Positions 56,676 to 64,000 of a stretch of DNA of 64,000 nucleotides are shown piece after piece (the first letter of the stretch is position 1; each line of letters starts with the position of its first letter). The stretch covers positions 1-64,000 of IMG/VR virus record IMGVR_UViG_3300020172_001601. One strand, written 5' to 3'. The notes below the pieces were generated by a model. It made no database searches and was not told the DNA's origin. It saw only the letters and a list, made by a program, of their open reading frames with translations. The translations under genes were made by a program, and so were the position numbers.

Positions 56676-56704
56676 TTTACAAGAGCGAAAAACCACGGTA
56701 TAAT
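56676..56704 (+). promoter_or_regulatory. Early-type promoter TTTACA-N17-TATAAT
   Basis: Exact 17-nt spacing with GG before the -10. Confidence 0.75.
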
Positions 56705-57643: not shown

Positions 57644-58372
57644 ATGAATATCAATAAAGTAACTATAACCGGGGCCGATAACAGTGTTCGCCCTGAAGAC
57701 CTTTTGGCTTTGTCTGCCGAATTCCCATTTGTCGAGTGGGCGATCCTGCTGAGTAGCACGAAAGAAGACAACCCCAGGTTCCCAAGTCGTGCCTGGATTG
57801 ACGAGCTTGCTGCTTTAGGAAAATCTCACAACCTTCAATTAGCAGGCCATGTTTGTGGAGCCTGGGTCCGAAATCTCGTTGTCAAGAAAGACCCTGCTGT
57901 ATTTGTTGAGCGGCCTGAATTTCTCGAATACTTCCCTCGTATTCAATTGAATTTCAGCCCATATCACGCAGCCCAATTGTTTTTGGATGTATTGAAGCCG
58001 TTCAACAACGAGTTCATTTTCCAAGTGGGCAGTCAAGGCAAGACAGACAAAGTAGCCTTGCTTAACCTTGGTCGTAGCTTGGGCTTAAACCTCTCGATCC
58101 TCTTTGATCGGTCGGGCGGCAAGGGCGTGGTGCCATCAGATTGGCCAGAGCCTATTGACCCATTTTACCTGGGTTATGCTGGCGGGCTGGGTCCAGACAC
58201 ATTGTCAGACCAATTGCCGAAAATATCGGAAACGGTGGGCGATAGAACGATTTGGATCGACATGGAATCCAGAGTTCGATCTGATGACGACCAGCAGTTC
58301 GATCTTGATAAGGTTCGTGCATGTCTTGAAATATCAAGACCTTGGGTCGATTCTACAGTACGATTGCCGTAA
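57644..58372 (+). CDS. TrpF (phosphoribosylanthranilate isomerase)-like TIM-barrel protein
   Basis: LFDRSGGKG, YAGGLGPD, WIDMESRVR, FDLDKV echo the PRAI C-terminal half. Confidence 0.6.
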   Translation: MNINKVTITGADNSVRPEDLLALSAEFPFVEWAILLSSTKEDNPRFPSRAWIDELAALGKSHNLQLAGHVCGAWVRNLVVKKDPAVFVERPEFLEYFPRIQLNFSPYHAAQLFLDVLKPFNNEFIFQVGSQGKTDKVALLNLGRSLGLNLSILFDRSGGKGVVPSDWPEPIDPFYLGYAGGLGPDTLSDQLPKISETVGDRTIWIDMESRVRSDDDQQFDLDKVRACLEISRPWVDSTVRLP

Positions 58373-58382
58373 AGAAGTCGGT

Positions 58383-58411
58383 TTTACAACCAACAAAAAA
58401 CGTGGTACAAT
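58383..58411 (+). promoter_or_regulatory. Early-type promoter TTTACA-N17-TACAAT
   Basis: Same class as 56676; embedded in a hairpin. Confidence 0.65.
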
Positions 58412-58440
58412 GTCTACAAGGGCATTGCCCACGTTTTTTT
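58395..58440 (+). terminator. Long hairpin/terminator overlapping the promoter
   Basis: aaaaaacgtgg..caatgtc / ggcattg.ccacgtttttt. Confidence 0.6.
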
Positions 58441-58493
58441 ATTGGTCGGGTTGAACCTGTTCCCCGGTTTCCTCTCTTGGCCTTCAGGAGAAA

Positions 58494-59009
58494 ATGATGG
58501 GCATCGACTACACGACATATATTGGACCTCACGTTCGTTGTAAGACGAAGAAGGTTCCGTCCACCAAGACGATTCGCACTTGTTCCGACGCAACCTGCAA
58601 GTTGTATGCAAGCGAAGTGTACGAGAAGCAGAAGAAGTTCTGTGGTCAATGTGGATCGCCGGTTGAAGATCGTGACCTTCCTATTGAAGTTGATAACGTC
58701 ATTGCCCATGACGTGCGAATGGACTTGTTGGATGAAGCCTTATATGACGTGCCGGGTGATTCTTTTCACTTTTGGATGAGAGACAATAATACCCACATTT
58801 GGCTCGCCAATAGGCATGTTCCTGACGCACGGGAATTCTCATTCGACCCTGAAGCGGACATTCAATATGTCCCCATGAATGCCGAATTGATCGCCAAAGA
58901 AATTGAACAGTTCAGTTCCTTCTACGAGAAGGAAATTACCATACTTCGAGAAGAGTATGGTGCTGAAAACGTAGAGGTTCAGTGGGGCCTCATTCACTAC
59001 ATCAGCTAA
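58494..59009 (+). CDS. Hypothetical protein with zinc ribbon
   Basis: CSDATC and FCGQCG; AGGAG RBS. Confidence 0.75.
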   Translation: MMGIDYTTYIGPHVRCKTKKVPSTKTIRTCSDATCKLYASEVYEKQKKFCGQCGSPVEDRDLPIEVDNVIAHDVRMDLLDEALYDVPGDSFHFWMRDNNTHIWLANRHVPDAREFSFDPEADIQYVPMNAELIAKEIEQFSSFYEKEITILREEYGAENVEVQWGLIHYIS

Positions 59010-59046: not shown

Positions 59047-61161
59047 ATGGCCGTCAAGCAGCAAGATCAAGAAGTTTCGGAACTTGAGTCAATCATCGAA
59101 ACCCTCGACACTTTGTATGAATCGGGCGATGATTGTGTGCATCCGATCACCGGGAAGTTGGTTTCTGACCCGGAATACGATACGCTACGCAAGCGGCTGT
59201 TTGACTTGCATCCCAAGTCCTATATCTTCAAGGACGTGACGGCTTCAAACGCTGTACAGCACAGCAGGAAGGTTCCTCACAATCCTCCGATGGTGTCGAT
59301 CTCCAAGGCTATTGGGCCTTTGCAGGAACGCACCGATACGTTGAAGGATTTCGTCGGCAAGGTTCAGGCAGAACTTGCCTATGCCGACAGCGAAGAGAAG
59401 TATCTTGTGCAAGCCTACAAGCGTGATGGCGTTGCCGTGGCATTGTACTATGAGAACGGCGTCTTGACTCGTGCCGGTCTTCGTCCTCGCAATGGTACTG
59501 ATGGTGAAGACGTGACAGAAAACATCAAGCACGTTGAAGGCGTTCCGACTGAATTGTGGGAACATGACAAAGACGGCAACCGGGTGAAGTTCCTGCCTGT
59601 CACTTGTTCCATTCGTGGCGAAATCGAATGCCGCAAGTCTGTCTTCCGCAAGGTCGTGGAAGATTGGAATGATCCCAAGTTCGGCCTCGATTCTGAACCC
59701 AAGAATCCTCGCAACTACTCAGCGGGCAGCATTCGTCAGTTCTCGAATCCGGGTGTCACGAAGGAGCGTCGTTTGACGTTCACTGGATATTCTATCCTCG
59801 GCTGGAATGCCAAGGACAATAGCCCTGCTCCGTTCAAGACGGAGATTGAGCGGGCGAAGTACAGCAATGCCAAACTTCGCATTCCGTTCGTGCAGGTTCG
59901 TCCTTTCCGTTGGTCCGATCTTCAAATCCTCGAAGACTTGTCTTCGCAATTGGATTATGAAGTTGACGGCGTGGTTATTTCCGTCAACAACCTCGAAGAC
60001 GCCGAACAGATGGGTACTCACGGTGGCACGGCTACCGGAAATCCCAAGGCCAAGATTGCTTGGAAGTTCGCCGAAGAGTCGGCAGTGGTCGAAGTCGAAG
60101 GCATCACTTGGACGCCGGGTCGCAGTGGCAAGCTGACGCCTGTGTTGAACTTCAAGGGTGTCAAGCTGGATGGCACAACCGTCAGTCAATGTACTGGTCA
60201 CAGCCTTGGTTTCCTCGACGGAACCAGCAAGGCCAGCCTGGGCGAGATCGGCAAGTGGACGGAAGTTCGCATCATCAAGTCCGGCAAGATCATTCCAAAG
60301 GTGATCGAGATCGTCAAGAAAGGCTTCAGCAAGTTGGAAGTTCCGACGAAGTGTCCTTCGTGTAACTCCAAACTGGAAACCCGTCAGGGCGGCGACGGCA
60401 AAGACTTGGTGTGTACGTCAGACTTCTGTGGCGTTCGGGCCGTTGCTCGTCTTGTTCACTTCCTTTCCACGATTGGAGTGAAGGGAATTTCGGACAGCAT
60501 CCTGACCCGTCTGCTGGACGAGAAGTTGGTTCAATATCCTGATGAACTGTATAGCCTTTCGGTGGGCAAGTTGACGACTATTGGATTTTCCAAGCGTCAA
60601 GCGTTGTTGATTGTGTCTCGGCTGTATCTGCATGATGATCCTGCTCATGCTACTGATGATGAATTGGATCAATTCATCAAGCAGAAGAAGACCATCAAGA
60701 TTCCGGCGTGGCAGTTCTTTGCTTCCTTCGGCATTCCCGGCACGGGCAAGTCCGCAGGGCAGGCGCTTATCAATCACTTCGGGACGTTCGACGCTATTGG
60801 GTCTGCAACCCTGGCTCAACTTCAGGAAGTGGATGGGCTGGGCGAAACTTCGGCCAATGCCATCGTCGCCTTCTTTGGCGAACATGATGATATGGTGAAG
60901 CAATTGCTCAAGTTCATCGAGCCGGAAGGCAAGAAGCAAGGCAAGTTGTCTGGCCAGACGTTCGTGTTCACGGGTGGCTTCGATGGTGGCAAGGCCGCTT
61001 GGGAAAAGAAGGTTATTGACCTGGGTGCCTCGGTGTCAGGATCGGTCAGCAAGACGACCAATTATGTGGTGGTCGGAACCGATGCAGGCAGCAAGGAAGC
61101 CAAGGCCAAGCAACTCGGCATCAAGATGCTGAGTCCCGATCAGCTTGAAAAGCTGCTGTAG
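59047..61161 (+). CDS. ligA: NAD-dependent DNA ligase
   Basis: SDPEYD, KRDG adenylation motif, RGE, NPRN..AG, YEVDGVV, AWKF, C4 zinc finger, HhH, BRCT (FVFTG...GSVSKTT). Confidence 0.95.
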   Translation: MAVKQQDQEVSELESIIETLDTLYESGDDCVHPITGKLVSDPEYDTLRKRLFDLHPKSYIFKDVTASNAVQHSRKVPHNPPMVSISKAIGPLQERTDTLKDFVGKVQAELAYADSEEKYLVQAYKRDGVAVALYYENGVLTRAGLRPRNGTDGEDVTENIKHVEGVPTELWEHDKDGNRVKFLPVTCSIRGEIECRKSVFRKVVEDWNDPKFGLDSEPKNPRNYSAGSIRQFSNPGVTKERRLTFTGYSILGWNAKDNSPAPFKTEIERAKYSNAKLRIPFVQVRPFRWSDLQILEDLSSQLDYEVDGVVISVNNLEDAEQMGTHGGTATGNPKAKIAWKFAEESAVVEVEGITWTPGRSGKLTPVLNFKGVKLDGTTVSQCTGHSLGFLDGTSKASLGEIGKWTEVRIIKSGKIIPKVIEIVKKGFSKLEVPTKCPSCNSKLETRQGGDGKDLVCTSDFCGVRAVARLVHFLSTIGVKGISDSILTRLLDEKLVQYPDELYSLSVGKLTTIGFSKRQALLIVSRLYLHDDPAHATDDELDQFIKQKKTIKIPAWQFFASFGIPGTGKSAGQALINHFGTFDAIGSATLAQLQEVDGLGETSANAIVAFFGEHDDMVKQLLKFIEPEGKKQGKLSGQTFVFTGGFDGGKAAWEKKVIDLGASVSGSVSKTTNYVVVGTDAGSKEAKAKQLGIKMLSPDQLEKLL

Positions 61162-61180: not shown

Positions 61181-61209
61181 TTTACAACATAGAAGGCAGG
61201 TGGTATTTT
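61181..61209 (+). promoter_or_regulatory. Early-type promoter TTTACA-N17-TATTTT
   Basis: Same class; the -10 lies at the tip of a 14-bp inverted repeat. Confidence 0.5.
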
Positions 61210-61223
61210 ATACCACCTGCCTT
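61193..61223. repeat. Perfect 14-bp inverted repeat (possible ligA terminator or operator)
   Basis: aaggcaggtggtat-ttt-ataccacctgcctt. Confidence 0.8.
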
Positions 61224-61231
61224 TCTTTAGA

Positions 61232-62332
61232 ATGCTGCTGAATGGAGAGAAGATGGAACGTCAAGAATTACTCAATAGCATTACTGCACAATTGGATGTA
61301 GCTGTTGATGAGAGCGATATTCGCCTACTGGCAAACAAATTGTGGCTTGATGCTGGTTCACCAGAAGGTGACGGAGCCTCTTTCTGGTTGGAGGCAGAGT
61401 CTCAATTGCTTGCCGACAAACGTGAGCAAATTGCCAAGACCATTCTTAATCGGGTGTTGATGCCCGTCATGCAAGAATCGGCAGCGTCTATTCAAGACGA
61501 GGCCCAAAAGTACACGCAGAACGCCGTCGCCGTATTGCAAAAAGAACTATTGGAGAACCAACAGTTGGTTTTGCCAGAAGGCGTTCGTTTTCACAAGCGA
61601 GTCGGCAAACTCGATTATCTTGTCATTGAACAGCAGCCTATGGTTCGCACCGTATTGGTTGATACCAGTTATCACAAAGGCAAAATTGGTGCGTCTCGAT
61701 ATGCAGAAGCGTCGTTGGGTGCAAAGGAATATCGCATTGCTTTGCCTTATGTGGTTTATCAGATTACGTTATCTGATTATCAAATGGCTAAGTTTCACAT
61801 TGCCTTCCGCACGGAACCATTGAAGACGCTCAAGGACAAATTGAGTCTTTGTGTTCTTCCTAACTCACATGCAGAAGGTACTGTGTGCTGTCCTTTCACA
61901 AGGCATAACCACACGAATATCGTTGATGCCGTGAGTCATATCATCGGCTTCTATTGGCAGTCGCAATATCGGTATTGTCTTCATCATAGTTTCCCCAACG
62001 ACCCAGCTTTCAAAACCTGGGATGCGTGGGAAAAAGCCAGTGAAGAAAACCCACTTTTTGTTCTCAATCTGAAGTGGCCGGAGTTGGGATACACATTGGC
62101 CGGATACCTGGGCGATGCTGCCAAGGAACAACCGCCAGCGCCGCCAGCAGGCTTCCAGGACTTGTCCTCGAAGTTCATCCGGGCAGCATCAAACATTCTG
62201 TCTTTCAAGGAAATTCCCAAACCCCAGCCTGTGGTCCAAATGACTGATGGCGATGTTCAAAATAAGGTCAAGCAGGCTCTTGATGCCTGCCTTAGAAGGT
62301 TACGGGAAGAACGGGAAGACGAAGATATTTAA
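61232..62332 (+). CDS. DUF2934-like plus prokaryotic E2-like (Prok-E2/PRTRC-B-like) domain protein
   Basis: IRLLANKLWLDAGSPEG...FWLEAE (DUF2934-like); LPYVVY...LPNSHAEGTVC...FYWQS (E2-like N..G.VC); start may be the GGAG-preceded downstream ATG. Confidence 0.55.
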   Translation: MLLNGEKMERQELLNSITAQLDVAVDESDIRLLANKLWLDAGSPEGDGASFWLEAESQLLADKREQIAKTILNRVLMPVMQESAASIQDEAQKYTQNAVAVLQKELLENQQLVLPEGVRFHKRVGKLDYLVIEQQPMVRTVLVDTSYHKGKIGASRYAEASLGAKEYRIALPYVVYQITLSDYQMAKFHIAFRTEPLKTLKDKLSLCVLPNSHAEGTVCCPFTRHNHTNIVDAVSHIIGFYWQSQYRYCLHHSFPNDPAFKTWDAWEKASEENPLFVLNLKWPELGYTLAGYLGDAAKEQPPAPPAGFQDLSSKFIRAASNILSFKEIPKPQPVVQMTDGDVQNKVKQALDACLRRLREEREDEDI

Positions 62333-62337
62333 TCTGC

Positions 62338-62366
62338 TTTACAGCCAGACCTATATGGGGTATAAT
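62338..62366 (+). promoter_or_regulatory. Early-type promoter TTTACA-N17-TATAAT
   Basis: Exact spacing with GG before the -10. Confidence 0.75.
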
Positions 62367-62374
62367 CGGTCATT

Positions 62375-63073
62375 GTGATCGCACGATATACTCCTGGCAA
62401 AGCAAAAGCCATGTTGCTCGAATTAGTGACAATTGAAACACCAGCCGCCTTCAAGGTGGTTAGCAGGGAGGCTATTGATCCGACGAAGTATATTTTCTTG
62501 GTCGAAGCGATTGCGCACAAGTTTCGGAAAAGGTTCCGGGGTAAATTCGAGAAGATCGAGGATACCGAGCCATATTCCATTGCTTCAATGGAGTTGGTCA
62601 AGGCCGCTGCCGGATACGATCCTGAAGTGAATGAAGACTTTAGCCGGTACGCATTTCGTGCGATGCGAAATGGAATTATCGAAGCCATTCGTCATCGTAA
62701 TCGTCAAAAGCGAACTGCTGAATTTGCCAAGTTGACCACTCTTGAGTGGCAAGAATTGCCAGAGAAAGAACAAGTTCTGTCTGCCGATATTCCCTCGGAT
62801 GTATATCAGACCTTGATGGCGAATCACCCGGACGATACCGAACAAGATCGTGCTGATAAGGCACTCTTGACGGAAATCTATATCCAGGGCAAAAAGATTC
62901 CATTCATTGCGGAGAAGTATGGAATCAGCAGAATGACGGTATACAACCGTCTTCGTCGCATCATTGGAAAAATCCGTCAGCGTCACAGCGACCTGATTGA
63001 GTCACACGGGGGAATACTCGATGAATGTCCTGAAAGAGAGCCTTGTCGTCTTCACCGAAGGGGCGAGGGTTAA
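62375..63073 (+). CDS. Sigma70-family (ECF-like) sigma factor
   Basis: LVKAAAGYDP...FSRYAFRAMRNGI (region 2); IAEKYGISRMTVYNRLRR (region 4 HTH); start 62375 or 62411. Confidence 0.85.
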   Translation: MIARYTPGKAKAMLLELVTIETPAAFKVVSREAIDPTKYIFLVEAIAHKFRKRFRGKFEKIEDTEPYSIASMELVKAAAGYDPEVNEDFSRYAFRAMRNGIIEAIRHRNRQKRTAEFAKLTTLEWQELPEKEQVLSADIPSDVYQTLMANHPDDTEQDRADKALLTEIYIQGKKIPFIAEKYGISRMTVYNRLRRIIGKIRQRHSDLIESHGGILDECPEREPCRLHRRGEG

Positions 63074-63527
63074 TTTCAAGGTATACGGCCATTTGGTTCC
63101 AGTGTTTGCAGGCTTGCTGGATGGTGAGCCTCAGATATTCGGAGTTGTGTGGGAAGATGCCGCTCAGAAAGAGGCGTTTGCCCGTCAGGTTCGTGATTGG
63201 ATCGCCGCAGATCGTCTCAAGGAATATATCATGGTGGTCGAAGCATGGACCGCCAATATTCCAGAGGGCGACCAGTATAAAGTCCGGGATTGGCTCAAAT
63301 CTCACGGAACCCTGCAAAATTGGCCCGACCGCAGCGAAGTGGTCATGGTCCTATATTGTTCGCCAACCGAAGAAATTGAGTATACAGCAGACATTATTCG
63401 TGGTAGAATCCCGGCACCAATGATCGGGGAATGGAAAATCAGCCAGCGTAAAGTGAAGTTCAACCACGAAGACTTCACTACTCGATTTCAAGGTTTGTTC
63501 CTTAAAAGCAAAGCGGGGCAAAACTAA
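63021..63527 (+). CDS. Hypothetical protein
   Basis: GGGGGA RBS before ATG 63021; EAW...P.R.EV motif. Confidence 0.7.
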   Translation: MNVLKESLVVFTEGARVNFKVYGHLVPVFAGLLDGEPQIFGVVWEDAAQKEAFARQVRDWIAADRLKEYIMVVEAWTANIPEGDQYKVRDWLKSHGTLQNWPDRSEVVMVLYCSPTEEIEYTADIIRGRIPAPMIGEWKISQRKVKFNHEDFTTRFQGLFLKSKAGQN

Positions 63528-64000
63528 TGCCATCACAACAAGAAATCGTCGATGCAGTCGCTCGCCAGTTGAAGGGCAAAGACCTCAGCCAGCAAGCAGT
63601 CATGGTTCTTCAGAAGGCTACGGCACGGGTGCTTGAGCGAATCAAGCAGAACGTCGATGCCCAAATCAAAGAAGACTCTTCGCCCATCGTTGAGAAGTTC
63701 GTCAAGAATGCCGCCACGAAAATGTCGGCAATGACCCAGCAATGGGCCGATGGCGTCAAGAATGATCTTGTCGTATTCCCGGAAGGAACTCGATATATTT
63801 GGCGTGATGGTCAAATGACAACCATCATCGTTGAGCAGCAGCCGCAGGTTCGCCATATCAACGTCTATGGCAAGATTTACTTGCTGTCGCTGCCATACGT
63901 CCAGTTCATCATGACGTTCAAGAACCACCAGTTGACACAATCTCTTCGGGTGACTTGCACCAAGAAACCAATCACTGATCTCGATCAGGCGGCGAACTTT
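63527..64000 (+). CDS. E2-like protein, paralog of 61232..62332 (3' truncated; absent from ORF track)
   Basis: Manual translation MPSQQEIVDAV...VVFPEGTRYIWRDG...IVEQQPQVRHI...YLLSLPYVQF...KKPITDLD, open to the window end. Confidence 0.75.
   Translation, partial: MPSQQEIVDAVARQLKGKDLSQQAVMVLQKATARVLERIKQNVDAQIKEDSSPIVEKFVKNAATKMSAMTQQWADGVKNDLVVFPEGTRYIWRDGQMTTIIVEQQPQVRHINVYGKIYLLSLPYVQFIMTFKNHQLTQSLRVTCTKKPITDLDQAANF

Follow-up and report, generated by a model that had tools for sequence, protein, structure and literature searches.

A huge freshwater bacteriophage carries what looks like its own complete ubiquitin-like conjugation cassette, with one ThiF-type E1, one ubiquitin-like protein (Ubl), one JAB protease and seven E2-like proteins. 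In bacteria such gene sets are so far known as anti-phage defences or as plasmid genes of unknown role, rather than as phage equipment. The DNA analysed here (the window) comprises the first 64,000 nucleotides of a 340-kb record, IMG/VR virus record IMGVR_UViG_3300020172_001601, and the two ORFs from which the analysis started, at 61232..62332 and from 63527, are the first two of three tandem E2-like genes that open the cassette. The remainder lies just past the window edge, with a third E2-like gene (E2b) at 64633..65679, the JAB/MPN+ protease at 65755..66678, the E1 at 66768..67538 and the Ubl at 67604..67936 of the record. A sequence-only reading had proposed that the paired ORFs were E2-like and marked the edge of a possible conjugation locus, such that E1, JAB and Ubl genes might lie beyond base 64000. 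All three are there, in one orientation and within 4 kb, and that interpretation is supported. Phage identity rests on PHROG hits to DNA polymerase, tail fibre and virion proteins in the window and on the IMG/VR classification, as Pfam terminase and capsid models were weak or absent in the record.

The two ORFs are paralogues. The first (61232..62332, plus strand, 366 aa) probably starts at Met8, at 61253, because all 13 orthologues and the called gene start at MERQELL, whilst the second (E2a) begins at 63527 on the plus strand, runs off the window and ends at 64639 of the record (370 aa). BLASTP between them gives E 1e-10 and 28% identity over 138 columns, covering the shared motif PEG.R...G....(I/V)EQQP.VR...LPYV. 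The first protein consists of an N-terminal DUF2934 module (residues 27-61, E 1.7e-6, 28 bits against a 22-bit gathering score), a helical linker, a Prok-E2_D-like core (residues ~108-300 of the 366-aa frame) and an acidic tail. E2a has a helical N-terminus, a Prok-E2_D-like core (residues 80-268) and a long C-terminal helix. An HMM of the shared core of about 190 residues finds seven paralogues in the 340-kb record at E 1.5e-76 to 4e-13, three in tandem and four dispersed, with the next hit at E 0.4, a similarity far beyond chance. In the first paralogue the loop LPNSHAEGTVCC places Cys219 eight residues after Asn211, and in E2a Cys171 follows Asn163 in the same way, so that the Asn-to-Cys spacing equals that of the canonical HPN-x7-C. 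This cysteine is invariant in the 14, 41 and 5 orthologues examined and is kept in all seven paralogues. The classical histidine of the HPN motif is, however, absent, with leucine at that position (LPN, LPH), a loss also described for 6d-type bacterial E2s (PMC1779556), and the conserved histidine that Iyer et al. describe C-terminal to the cysteine in 6d-type E2s is not conserved here either.

The predicted structures are consistent with a UBC-like fold, although the match to solved E2s is only moderate. The core of the first paralogue was modelled with a pLDDT of 90.1 and pTM of 0.87. In an unbiased VIA search of 48,161 PDB chains only two reached Z of 5 or more, both of them E2/UEV proteins: Ube2W (Z 5.4, 108 residues, rmsd 4.2) and Mms2/Ubc13 (5.1), followed by the Tsg101 UEV and UbcH7 (both 4.8). 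Most of the top 50 were UBC, UEV or RWD proteins, including the bacterial BubCD, CdnG-E2 and Cap2 at Z 3.8-4.3. For the E2a model (core pLDDT about 90), every core-covering PDB hit was an E2 (UBE2S, UbcH10, Rad6 and Ube2N; Z 5-5.8 over 120-131 residues); the equivalent search with the full-length E2a model was swamped by its long helices, which is why the core was folded alone. In the ESM Atlas, the model of the first paralogue overlays a cluster carrying PF14460 with a TM of 0.85 (rmsd 2.1 over 181 residues) and a bacterial alpha-hel2 + Prok-E2_D cluster with a TM of 0.69. By contrast, Foldseek against the PDB found nothing at E<=0.001 with either model, and profile searches against PDB sequences gave nothing for the full E2a alignment and nothing significant for the E2 core. 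At the sequence level, Prok-E2_D and PRTRC_B were the only family hits to this core. E2a scores 18 bits (E 0.0025) against the 25-bit threshold for Prok-E2_D, whereas the first paralogue and E2b have no hit, although many of 54 E2a orthologues carry precomputed PF14460 hits and hhalign to a bona fide Cupriavidus PRTRC_B gives E 6.4e-4 across the Cys loop.

The JAB protein scores 26.5 bits with Prok-JAB, over its cut-off, and its HSH-x7-S-x2-D metal site, HSHCDFSAYHSGTD, is conserved together with an upstream catalytic Glu in five phage orthologues, PRTRC_A and gp195 of the Bacillus phage KLEB27-3. The E1 is a 256-aa single-domain protein that scores 47.5 bits with PF00899 against a cut-off of 28.1. 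Its GTGGIG, DGD..E..N..RQ and CVDN..TR motifs and Cys193 are conserved in the phage orthologues and in the PRTRC ThiF proteins. The 110-aa Ubl, encoded 66 nt after the E1 gene, ends in AGVKG, and LEF[VI]K[QA]AGVKG is near-invariant in about 100 of 117 homologues. Of these, 44 proteins (the query included) end at the Gly, about 50 carry unconserved tails of 1-11 residues, one carries a 28-residue tail and 4 carry an extra domain of ~65 aa, as in Ubl precursors. Its assignment as a beta-grasp protein is nevertheless tentative, since only weak TGS (E 0.0016) and ThiS (E 0.065) matches were found over residues 75-104 and a profile search against PDB sequences was not significant. A complex prediction for the E1, Ubl (residues 40-110) and E2a core, with the E2a core as partner, scored 0.07 and 0.26, under the 0.32 mark, and is not taken as evidence either way.

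The ThiS-like character of the small protein raises the possibility that the E1, Ubl and JAB form a sulfur-carrier pathway like ThiS/MoaD/CysO-Mec+, serving a cofactor or a nucleic-acid thiomodification, with the E2-like proteins as non-catalytic accessories. After PRTRC_ThiF, the next-best matches of the E1 are ThiF, MoeB and Uba4, and operons pairing JAB with ThiS/MoaD and E1-like proteins in sulfur metabolism have been described (PMC1779556). We consider this unlikely: the E1 has no rhodanese domain, none of the adjacent genes scanned has a sulfur-metabolism family (although no dedicated search for sulfurtransferase, cysteine synthase or cofactor genes was run), the tight linkage to Cys-bearing proteins with a predicted UBC fold is conserved, and the best E1 and JAB family hits are the PRTRC versions, which accompany E2s. 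It is equally doubtful that the E2-like proteins are decoys, an alternative raised in the sequence-only reading, or sponges that intercept host Ubl systems (Bil, CBASS Cap2) whilst the JAB strips host-made conjugates. The E2-like copies do vary in their flanking modules, but a decoy has no need for the cysteine that is kept in all seven paralogues and in every orthologue examined, and the phage also encodes its own E1 and its own Ubl with a processable C-terminal Gly.

The closest known system is PRTRC (TIGR03734-03742), which corresponds to operon type ‘6d’ of Iyer, Burroughs and Aravind (PMC1779556), comprising a Ubl, an alpha-helical protein, an E2-like protein (Prok-E2_D), a JAB with JAB-N and a ThiF-like E1 on plasmids and ICEs, and known by bioinformatics since 2006 without any assigned function. 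PRTRC_A (E 1.5e-7; 31.2 bits), PRTRC_ThiF (E 1.2e-14; 54.2 bits) and PRTRC_B (13.7 bits) are the best NCBIfam hits of the JAB, the E1 and E2a respectively, the gene order E2-JAB-ThiF equals B-A-ThiF on a Cupriavidus plasmid, the Ubl C-terminus resembles the FVRAAGAKG of PRTRC_C, and the PRTRC_A model covers the N-terminal extra domain of the JAB. The E1 also finds large Bacillus, Vibrio and Clostridium plasmids. It is therefore conceivable that this is a PRTRC-type cassette doing whatever PRTRC does on plasmids and ICEs, where it is linked to ParB and so perhaps to DNA maintenance, and that here it serves an episomal lifestyle of the huge phage. The evidence makes this improbable. The scores are far below the curated cut-offs (101.8, 144.75 and 131.45 bits for PRTRC_A, PRTRC_ThiF and PRTRC_B), the protein C model does not hit the Ubl, and proteins D, E and F have no match in the record, which is estimated to be 69% complete. 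No ParB lies next to the cassette, the ParB model giving only generic N-terminal hits at 140 kb and 196 kb (28.9 bits against a cut-off of 278.6), and the neighbours are a sigma factor and a ligase rather than partition genes. The cassette is carried by a huge lytic-type phage genome, its Ubl gene follows rather than precedes the enzymes and encodes an N-terminal extension of ~45 aa, and its E2-like proteins are ~350 aa long with helical or DUF2934 extensions. We therefore regard it as a distant, phage-borne relative of the PRTRC cassette and not as a member.

A simpler trio of E2_D-like, PRTRC_A-like JAB and ThiF genes, in the same E2-JAB-ThiF order, is present in cultured Bacillus jumbo phages (vB_BauM_KLEB27-3 gp196-gp194, OM634661; vB_BceM_WH1 gp214-216, LC597490; Edson, PV796108). 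KLEB27-3 gp196 hits Prok-E2_D (E 2.7e-4) and aligns to the present family over the Cys loop, and the GenBank record already notes a ‘PRTRC_A domain’ on gp195. The E1 proteins are, however, only 26-29% identical, one E2-like gene per genome was detected (or none at the threshold used), we identified no Ubl gene next to the trio, and no sigma factor is linked. Among deposited phages only the E1 reached these genomes, as blastn with the locus and tblastn with E2a found nothing, and a scan of IMG/VR found one other locus. We found no paper discussing the Bacillus phage genes, and no treatment of phage-encoded E1, E2, JAB and Ubl genes in two jumbo-phage overviews (PMC7824862, PMC13282480) or elsewhere in the literature searched.

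Like the cassette described here, the bacterial ISG15-like anti-phage system Bil (BilABCD) has separate Ubl, E2, JAB and E1 genes, and conjugation through E1 and E2 cysteines is the mechanism that we propose. The link drawn in the sequence-only reading to Bil or type II CBASS is nevertheless by analogy only. PADLOC models returned only a weak and irrelevant LeoBC hit for the E2-like proteins, the JAB and the conserved 168-aa protein described below (the E1 and Ubl were not scanned). The E1 is neither the tandem-domain enzyme needed for Bil nor fused to an E2 as in CBASS with its CD-NTase, for which no dedicated search was run. The cascade might still be active as a phage-carried defence against competing phages or other mobile elements, tagging a rival's structural proteins as Bil does rather than remodelling the host. 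The characterised bacterial Ubl-conjugation operons (Bil, type II CBASS) are anti-phage systems, Bub operons associate with immune regulators (PMC11601596), and multiple E2 paralogues could track diverse rivals. This is possible but unlikely, because defence genes are usually patchy and found in variable islands, whereas the present module sits in fixed synteny with core replication and transcription genes (ligase, sigma factor) across relatives as little as 39% identical.

Considering these data together, we favour the explanation that the cassette directs ubiquitin-like conjugation encoded by the phage itself, to which we would assign a probability of about 0.6, with every biochemical step inferred from family knowledge. 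In this scheme the E1 adenylates the C-terminal Gly110 of the Ubl and probably then holds it as a thioester on Cys193, which is conserved in the phage orthologues, in two PRTRC ThiF proteins and in a Bacillus-phage ThiF. The Ubl would pass to the invariant cysteine of an E2-like protein, which would transfer it to target amino groups without a recognisable E3, and the JAB protease would remove the variable residues that follow the Gly in many orthologues and/or deconjugate the Ubl. The record holds only one E1, one JAB and one Ubl, whilst the seven E2-like paralogues carry different flanking modules (DUF2934, coiled-coil helices, acidic or basic tails). We therefore propose that the paralogues are specificity factors that send one tag to different targets. 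This recalls the eukaryotic arrangement of one E1 serving many E2s, although no RING, HECT or RBR E3 or target was recognised, the E2-like proteins are only distantly related to eukaryotic ones, and the Ubl is ThiS-like with a single terminal Gly rather than the GG of ubiquitin. As the cassette sits among replication and transcription genes, is fused in synteny to a sigma-factor gene and lies behind sigma-70-like promoter motifs, we favour a role in host take-over or counter-defence during infection, which is the least supported step of the explanation. More tentatively, a clade of huge freshwater and sediment phages may run its own E3-independent conjugation network, with a radiated set of E2-like enzymes, each with its own targeting module, tagging host and/or phage proteins and possibly the transcription apparatus, given the fixed linkage to a sigma factor and, in one relative, an RNAP alpha-CTD-like gene. 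This would be a viral, offensive use of a system so far known in prokaryotes only as host defence or as uncharacterised plasmid cargo. The conserved, apparently complete cascade suggests that viruses of bacteria also use protein tagging, as many eukaryotic viruses do.

The module of sigma factor, 168-aa protein of unknown function, E2a, E2b, JAB, E1 and Ubl recurs in relatives on contigs of 100-673 kb. The sigma-70/ECF-family sigma factor gene (62375..63073, plus strand; TIGR02937 E 3e-15, 56 bits against a cut-off of 42.9; Sigma70_r2 27 bits) precedes the cassette in the four relatives whose loci could be read, whereas in a fifth the gene at that position has no Pfam hit. Nine nt upstream of it lies a promoter-like site, TTTACA-N17-TATAAT (62338..62366, plus strand; 11 of 12 positions), which belongs to a 25-site motif class in the record. 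As this is a consensus match only, and without RNA data, the suggestion in the sequence-only reading that the genes are expressed early is not supported as stated. The gene for the 168-aa protein (63021..63527, plus strand) overlaps the end of the sigma gene at its start and the E2a start at its stop. The protein shares 47-70% identity with four orthologues, with 51 invariant columns, but matches no Pfam, NCBIfam, PHROG or PADLOC family and has no similarity to PRTRC_E, and its Atlas look-alikes are viral hypothetical proteins. The first E2-like paralogue (61253..62332) is lineage-specific, as it is absent at this position in four syntenic relatives. In the 673-kb relative, a 270-aa protein considered as part of a split copy is not E2-like, and only its 144-aa neighbour shares the DUF2934 module.

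The window, the first 64 kb of a 340,341-bp IMG/VR virus record that CheckV estimates to be 69% complete, encodes a phage-type DNA polymerase (phrog_405, E 5e-136), a collagen-like tail fibre and a virion structural protein (phrog_1645, E 5e-111). The element is therefore a jumbo phage, not a plasmid. Near-identical DNA occurs in freshwater and sediment metagenomes, whilst no RNA run holds it. The sequence-only reading had proposed that two ORFs at the edge of this stretch are paired E2-like proteins sharing a motif block, and both the ORF at 61232..62332 (P0001, 366 aa) and the frame opening at 63527 are indeed present, with BLASTP between them giving an E value of 1e-10 over that block. P0001 carries DUF2934 at residues 27-61 (28 bits, against a gathering score of 22) and contains LPNSHAEGTVCC. 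Its real start is probably Met8 (61253), as observed in all 13 orthologues and in the called gene. The second ORF (P0005, 370 aa) continues to 64639 in the record and is referred to here as E2a.

Reading on in the record reveals, all on the + strand, a third paralogue, E2b, at 64633..65679; a 307-aa protein at 65755..66678 with HSHCDFSAYHSGTD, the HxH-x7-S-x2-D site of JAB/MPN+ proteases; a 256-aa ThiF-type protein at 66768..67538 with GTGGIG; and a 110-aa protein at 67604..67936 ending in LEFVKQAGVKG. A 306-aa antisense ORF on the minus strand (66798-67718) overlaps the E1 gene and is longer than the true frame, which means that naive longest-ORF calling would mask the ThiF gene. Family scans confirm the enzymes. 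The JAB scores 26.5 bits on Prok-JAB in the genome search, over its cut-off, and E 1.5e-7 on PRTRC_A, whilst the E1 scores 47.5 bits on ThiF against a cut-off of 28.1 bits, with PRTRC_ThiF as its best NCBIfam hit (E 1.2e-14).

The sequence evidence that the paralogues are E2-like comes from several directions. E2a weakly hits Prok-E2_D (E 0.0025) and PRTRC_B, and many of its 54 orthologues carry precomputed PF14460 hits. A profile of the core shared by the paralogues (A3) aligns to a bona fide PRTRC_B from a Cupriavidus plasmid across the Cys loop (hhalign E 6.4e-4). Across the three families the invariant residues are P115, E133, R139, P172, Y173, C219, W242 and W266 in P0001 numbering. The Asn-to-Cys spacing equals the canonical HPN-x7-C, although the His is replaced by Leu.

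Structural modelling points in the same direction. The E2a model has a core with a pLDDT of about 90, and when this was re-aligned to the top chains returned by Foldseek, every hit covering the core was an E2 (UBE2S, UbcH10, Rad6, Ube2N and UbcH7), with Z 5.0-5.8 over 120-131 residues. The isolated P0001 core models at pLDDT 90.1 and pTM 0.87. In a search of 48,161 PDB representatives that does not rely on Foldseek, only two chains reached Z>=5, and both are E2/UEV (Ube2W, 5.4; Mms2 of the Ubc13-Mms2 complex, 5.1), with most of the top 50 being UBC, UEV or RWD proteins, including the bacterial BubCD, CdnG-E2 and Cap2. Although the Z values against solved structures are modest, we consider the assignment to a UBC-fold, Prok-E2_D-like protein to be well supported. 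Against ESM Atlas models the core overlays a cluster carrying PF14460 at TM 0.85 (rmsd 2.1 over 181 residues), and a bacterial 'alpha-hel2 + Prok-E2_D' cluster at TM 0.69. A comparison with BFVD returned only uncharacterised Caudovirales proteins, at E 7e-9 to 5e-4.

The 110-aa candidate Ubl has only weak TGS and ThiS matches, but its comparative signature is much stronger. Of 117 homologues, about 100 keep LEF[VI]K[QA]AGVKG. Of these, 44 (the query included) end exactly at the Gly, about 50 carry unconserved tails of 1-11 residues, one carries a 28-residue tail and 4 carry an appended domain of ~65 aa. This conserved domain, found in the homologues P0129, P0130, P0132 and P0140, directly follows the AGVKG Gly, a natural Ubl-fusion precursor that would need cleavage. 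An invariant terminal Gly followed by disposable sequence is the hallmark of Ubl precursors, and it gives the adjacent JAB a job. The tail also resembles that of PRTRC_C, FVRAAGAKG. The enzymes themselves look active: the E1 keeps the adenylation motifs and a Cys (C193) that is also conserved in two PRTRC ThiF proteins and in a Bacillus-phage ThiF, and the JAB keeps the Glu and the metal ligands.

Relatives on contigs of 104 kb to 673 kb share one module, in which an NAD-ligase is followed, not necessarily directly, by a sigma factor, an unknown protein of ~165 aa, E2a, E2b, the JAB, ThiF and a Ubl of ~110 aa. Their E2a identity to this phage ranges from 64% down to 46%, and the sigma/unknown/E2a/E2b gene boundaries overlap. 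In the present phage a full-length NAD-dependent DNA ligase with adenylation, OB, HhH and BRCT domains lies immediately upstream (59047-61161), and before it (57644-59009) are a zinc-ribbon-like 171-aa protein and a 242-aa unknown. The sigma-70/ECF-family sigma factor gene (62375-63073) and the conserved 168-aa unknown (63021-63527) precede E2a in the four relatives whose loci could be read, whilst in a fifth relative the gene in the sigma position has no Pfam hit. Paralogue 1, the DUF2934-bearing gene P0001, is lineage-specific: it is absent at that position in these relatives and has only 14 homologues. In the 673-kb relative a separate 144-aa DUF2934 protein sits in the equivalent place. 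The DUF2934 module also heads a T4 Rnl1-like RNA ligase that carries an L7/L12-CTD-like segment (record 165397-166863), with weaker hits near 119.4 kb and 222.4 kb. DUF2934 therefore looks like a portable N-terminal module on several phage enzymes, possibly for targeting.

An unexpected expansion was revealed when an HMM of the core was run against all ORFs of the record. Seven E2-like genes were found, at 61232-62332, 63527-64639, 64633-65679, 107888-108613, 180438-181202, 186851-187534 and 230898-231506, with E values from 1.5e-76 to 4e-13, the next hit being at E 0.4. All seven have the Cys aligned. The last four are stand-alone genes (about 200-250 aa) that lie outside the window, dispersed through the phage genome. 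By contrast, there is only one E1, one Ubl and one JAB in the 340 kb.

The closest described kind of system is the PRTRC cassette, the '6d' operon of Iyer et al. 2006, which has a small Ubl with a C-terminal Gly, a helical protein, a Cys-bearing E2 lacking the HPN His, a JAB with an N-terminal domain, and an E1 (PMC1779556). On a Cupriavidus plasmid the order is ParB-E-C-F-B-A-ThiF, and the phage cassette shares the B-A-ThiF order and the best family hits. It nevertheless fails membership, since all scores are far below the curated cut-offs, there is no adjacent ParB, proteins D, E and F are not detectable in this record (estimated to be 69% complete), and the conserved His after the Cys is missing. 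Cultured Bacillus jumbo phages (KLEB27-3, WH1 and Edson) carry a simpler trio of E2_D-like, PRTRC_A-like JAB and ThiF genes. Phage-borne versions are therefore already in GenBank, annotated as hypothetical, although we found no paper discussing them and two jumbo-phage overviews do not mention E1, JAB or Ubl systems. Bil, type II CBASS and Bub are functional analogues, not relatives that pass any of the tests made here.

With an apparently complete set of parts in conserved synteny, it is possible to sketch a mechanism. On the basis of what is known of these families we infer adenylation and thioester formation by the E1, transthiolation to the E2 Cys, E3-independent transfer to targets, and trimming and deconjugation by the JAB. 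The anatomy of the paralogues leads us to infer, in addition, that they act as specificity factors. The biological role is the weakest step, and take-over or counter-defence, exclusion of rivals and maintenance are all options.

Some indications of how the locus may be transcribed come from promoter-like sites. Two near-consensus TTTACA-N17-TATAAT sites sit just upstream of the sigma gene (62338) and of the JAB gene (65667), which suggests two transcription units but does not establish timing, such as the early expression inferred in the sequence-only reading. These sites belong to a motif class, TTTACA-N14-15-(T)GGTA[TCA]AAT (TTTACA-N14-15-TGGTATAAT), that occurs 25 times, at 56676, 58383 and 62338 in the window, at 65667 and 108614 in the record, and at 20 more sites. 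The class is strongly intergenic and co-oriented with genes: 23 sites are on the + strand and 18 are intergenic, although about 91% of the record is coding. It is probably a real promoter class, read either by host sigma-70 or by the phage sigma factor. In one relative, on the contig carrying P0038, E2b is missing from the tandem position, and an RNA polymerase alpha-CTD-like 117-aa gene and a stand-alone 195-aa Prok-E2_D gene follow the Ubl, which is another hint of a link to transcription. Finally, a perfect palindrome with a 14-bp stem (7 G-C pairs, 3-nt loop) at 61193-61223, in the intergenic region between the ligase and paralogue 1, overlaps a weaker TTTACA promoter-like site and may be a terminator or an operator.
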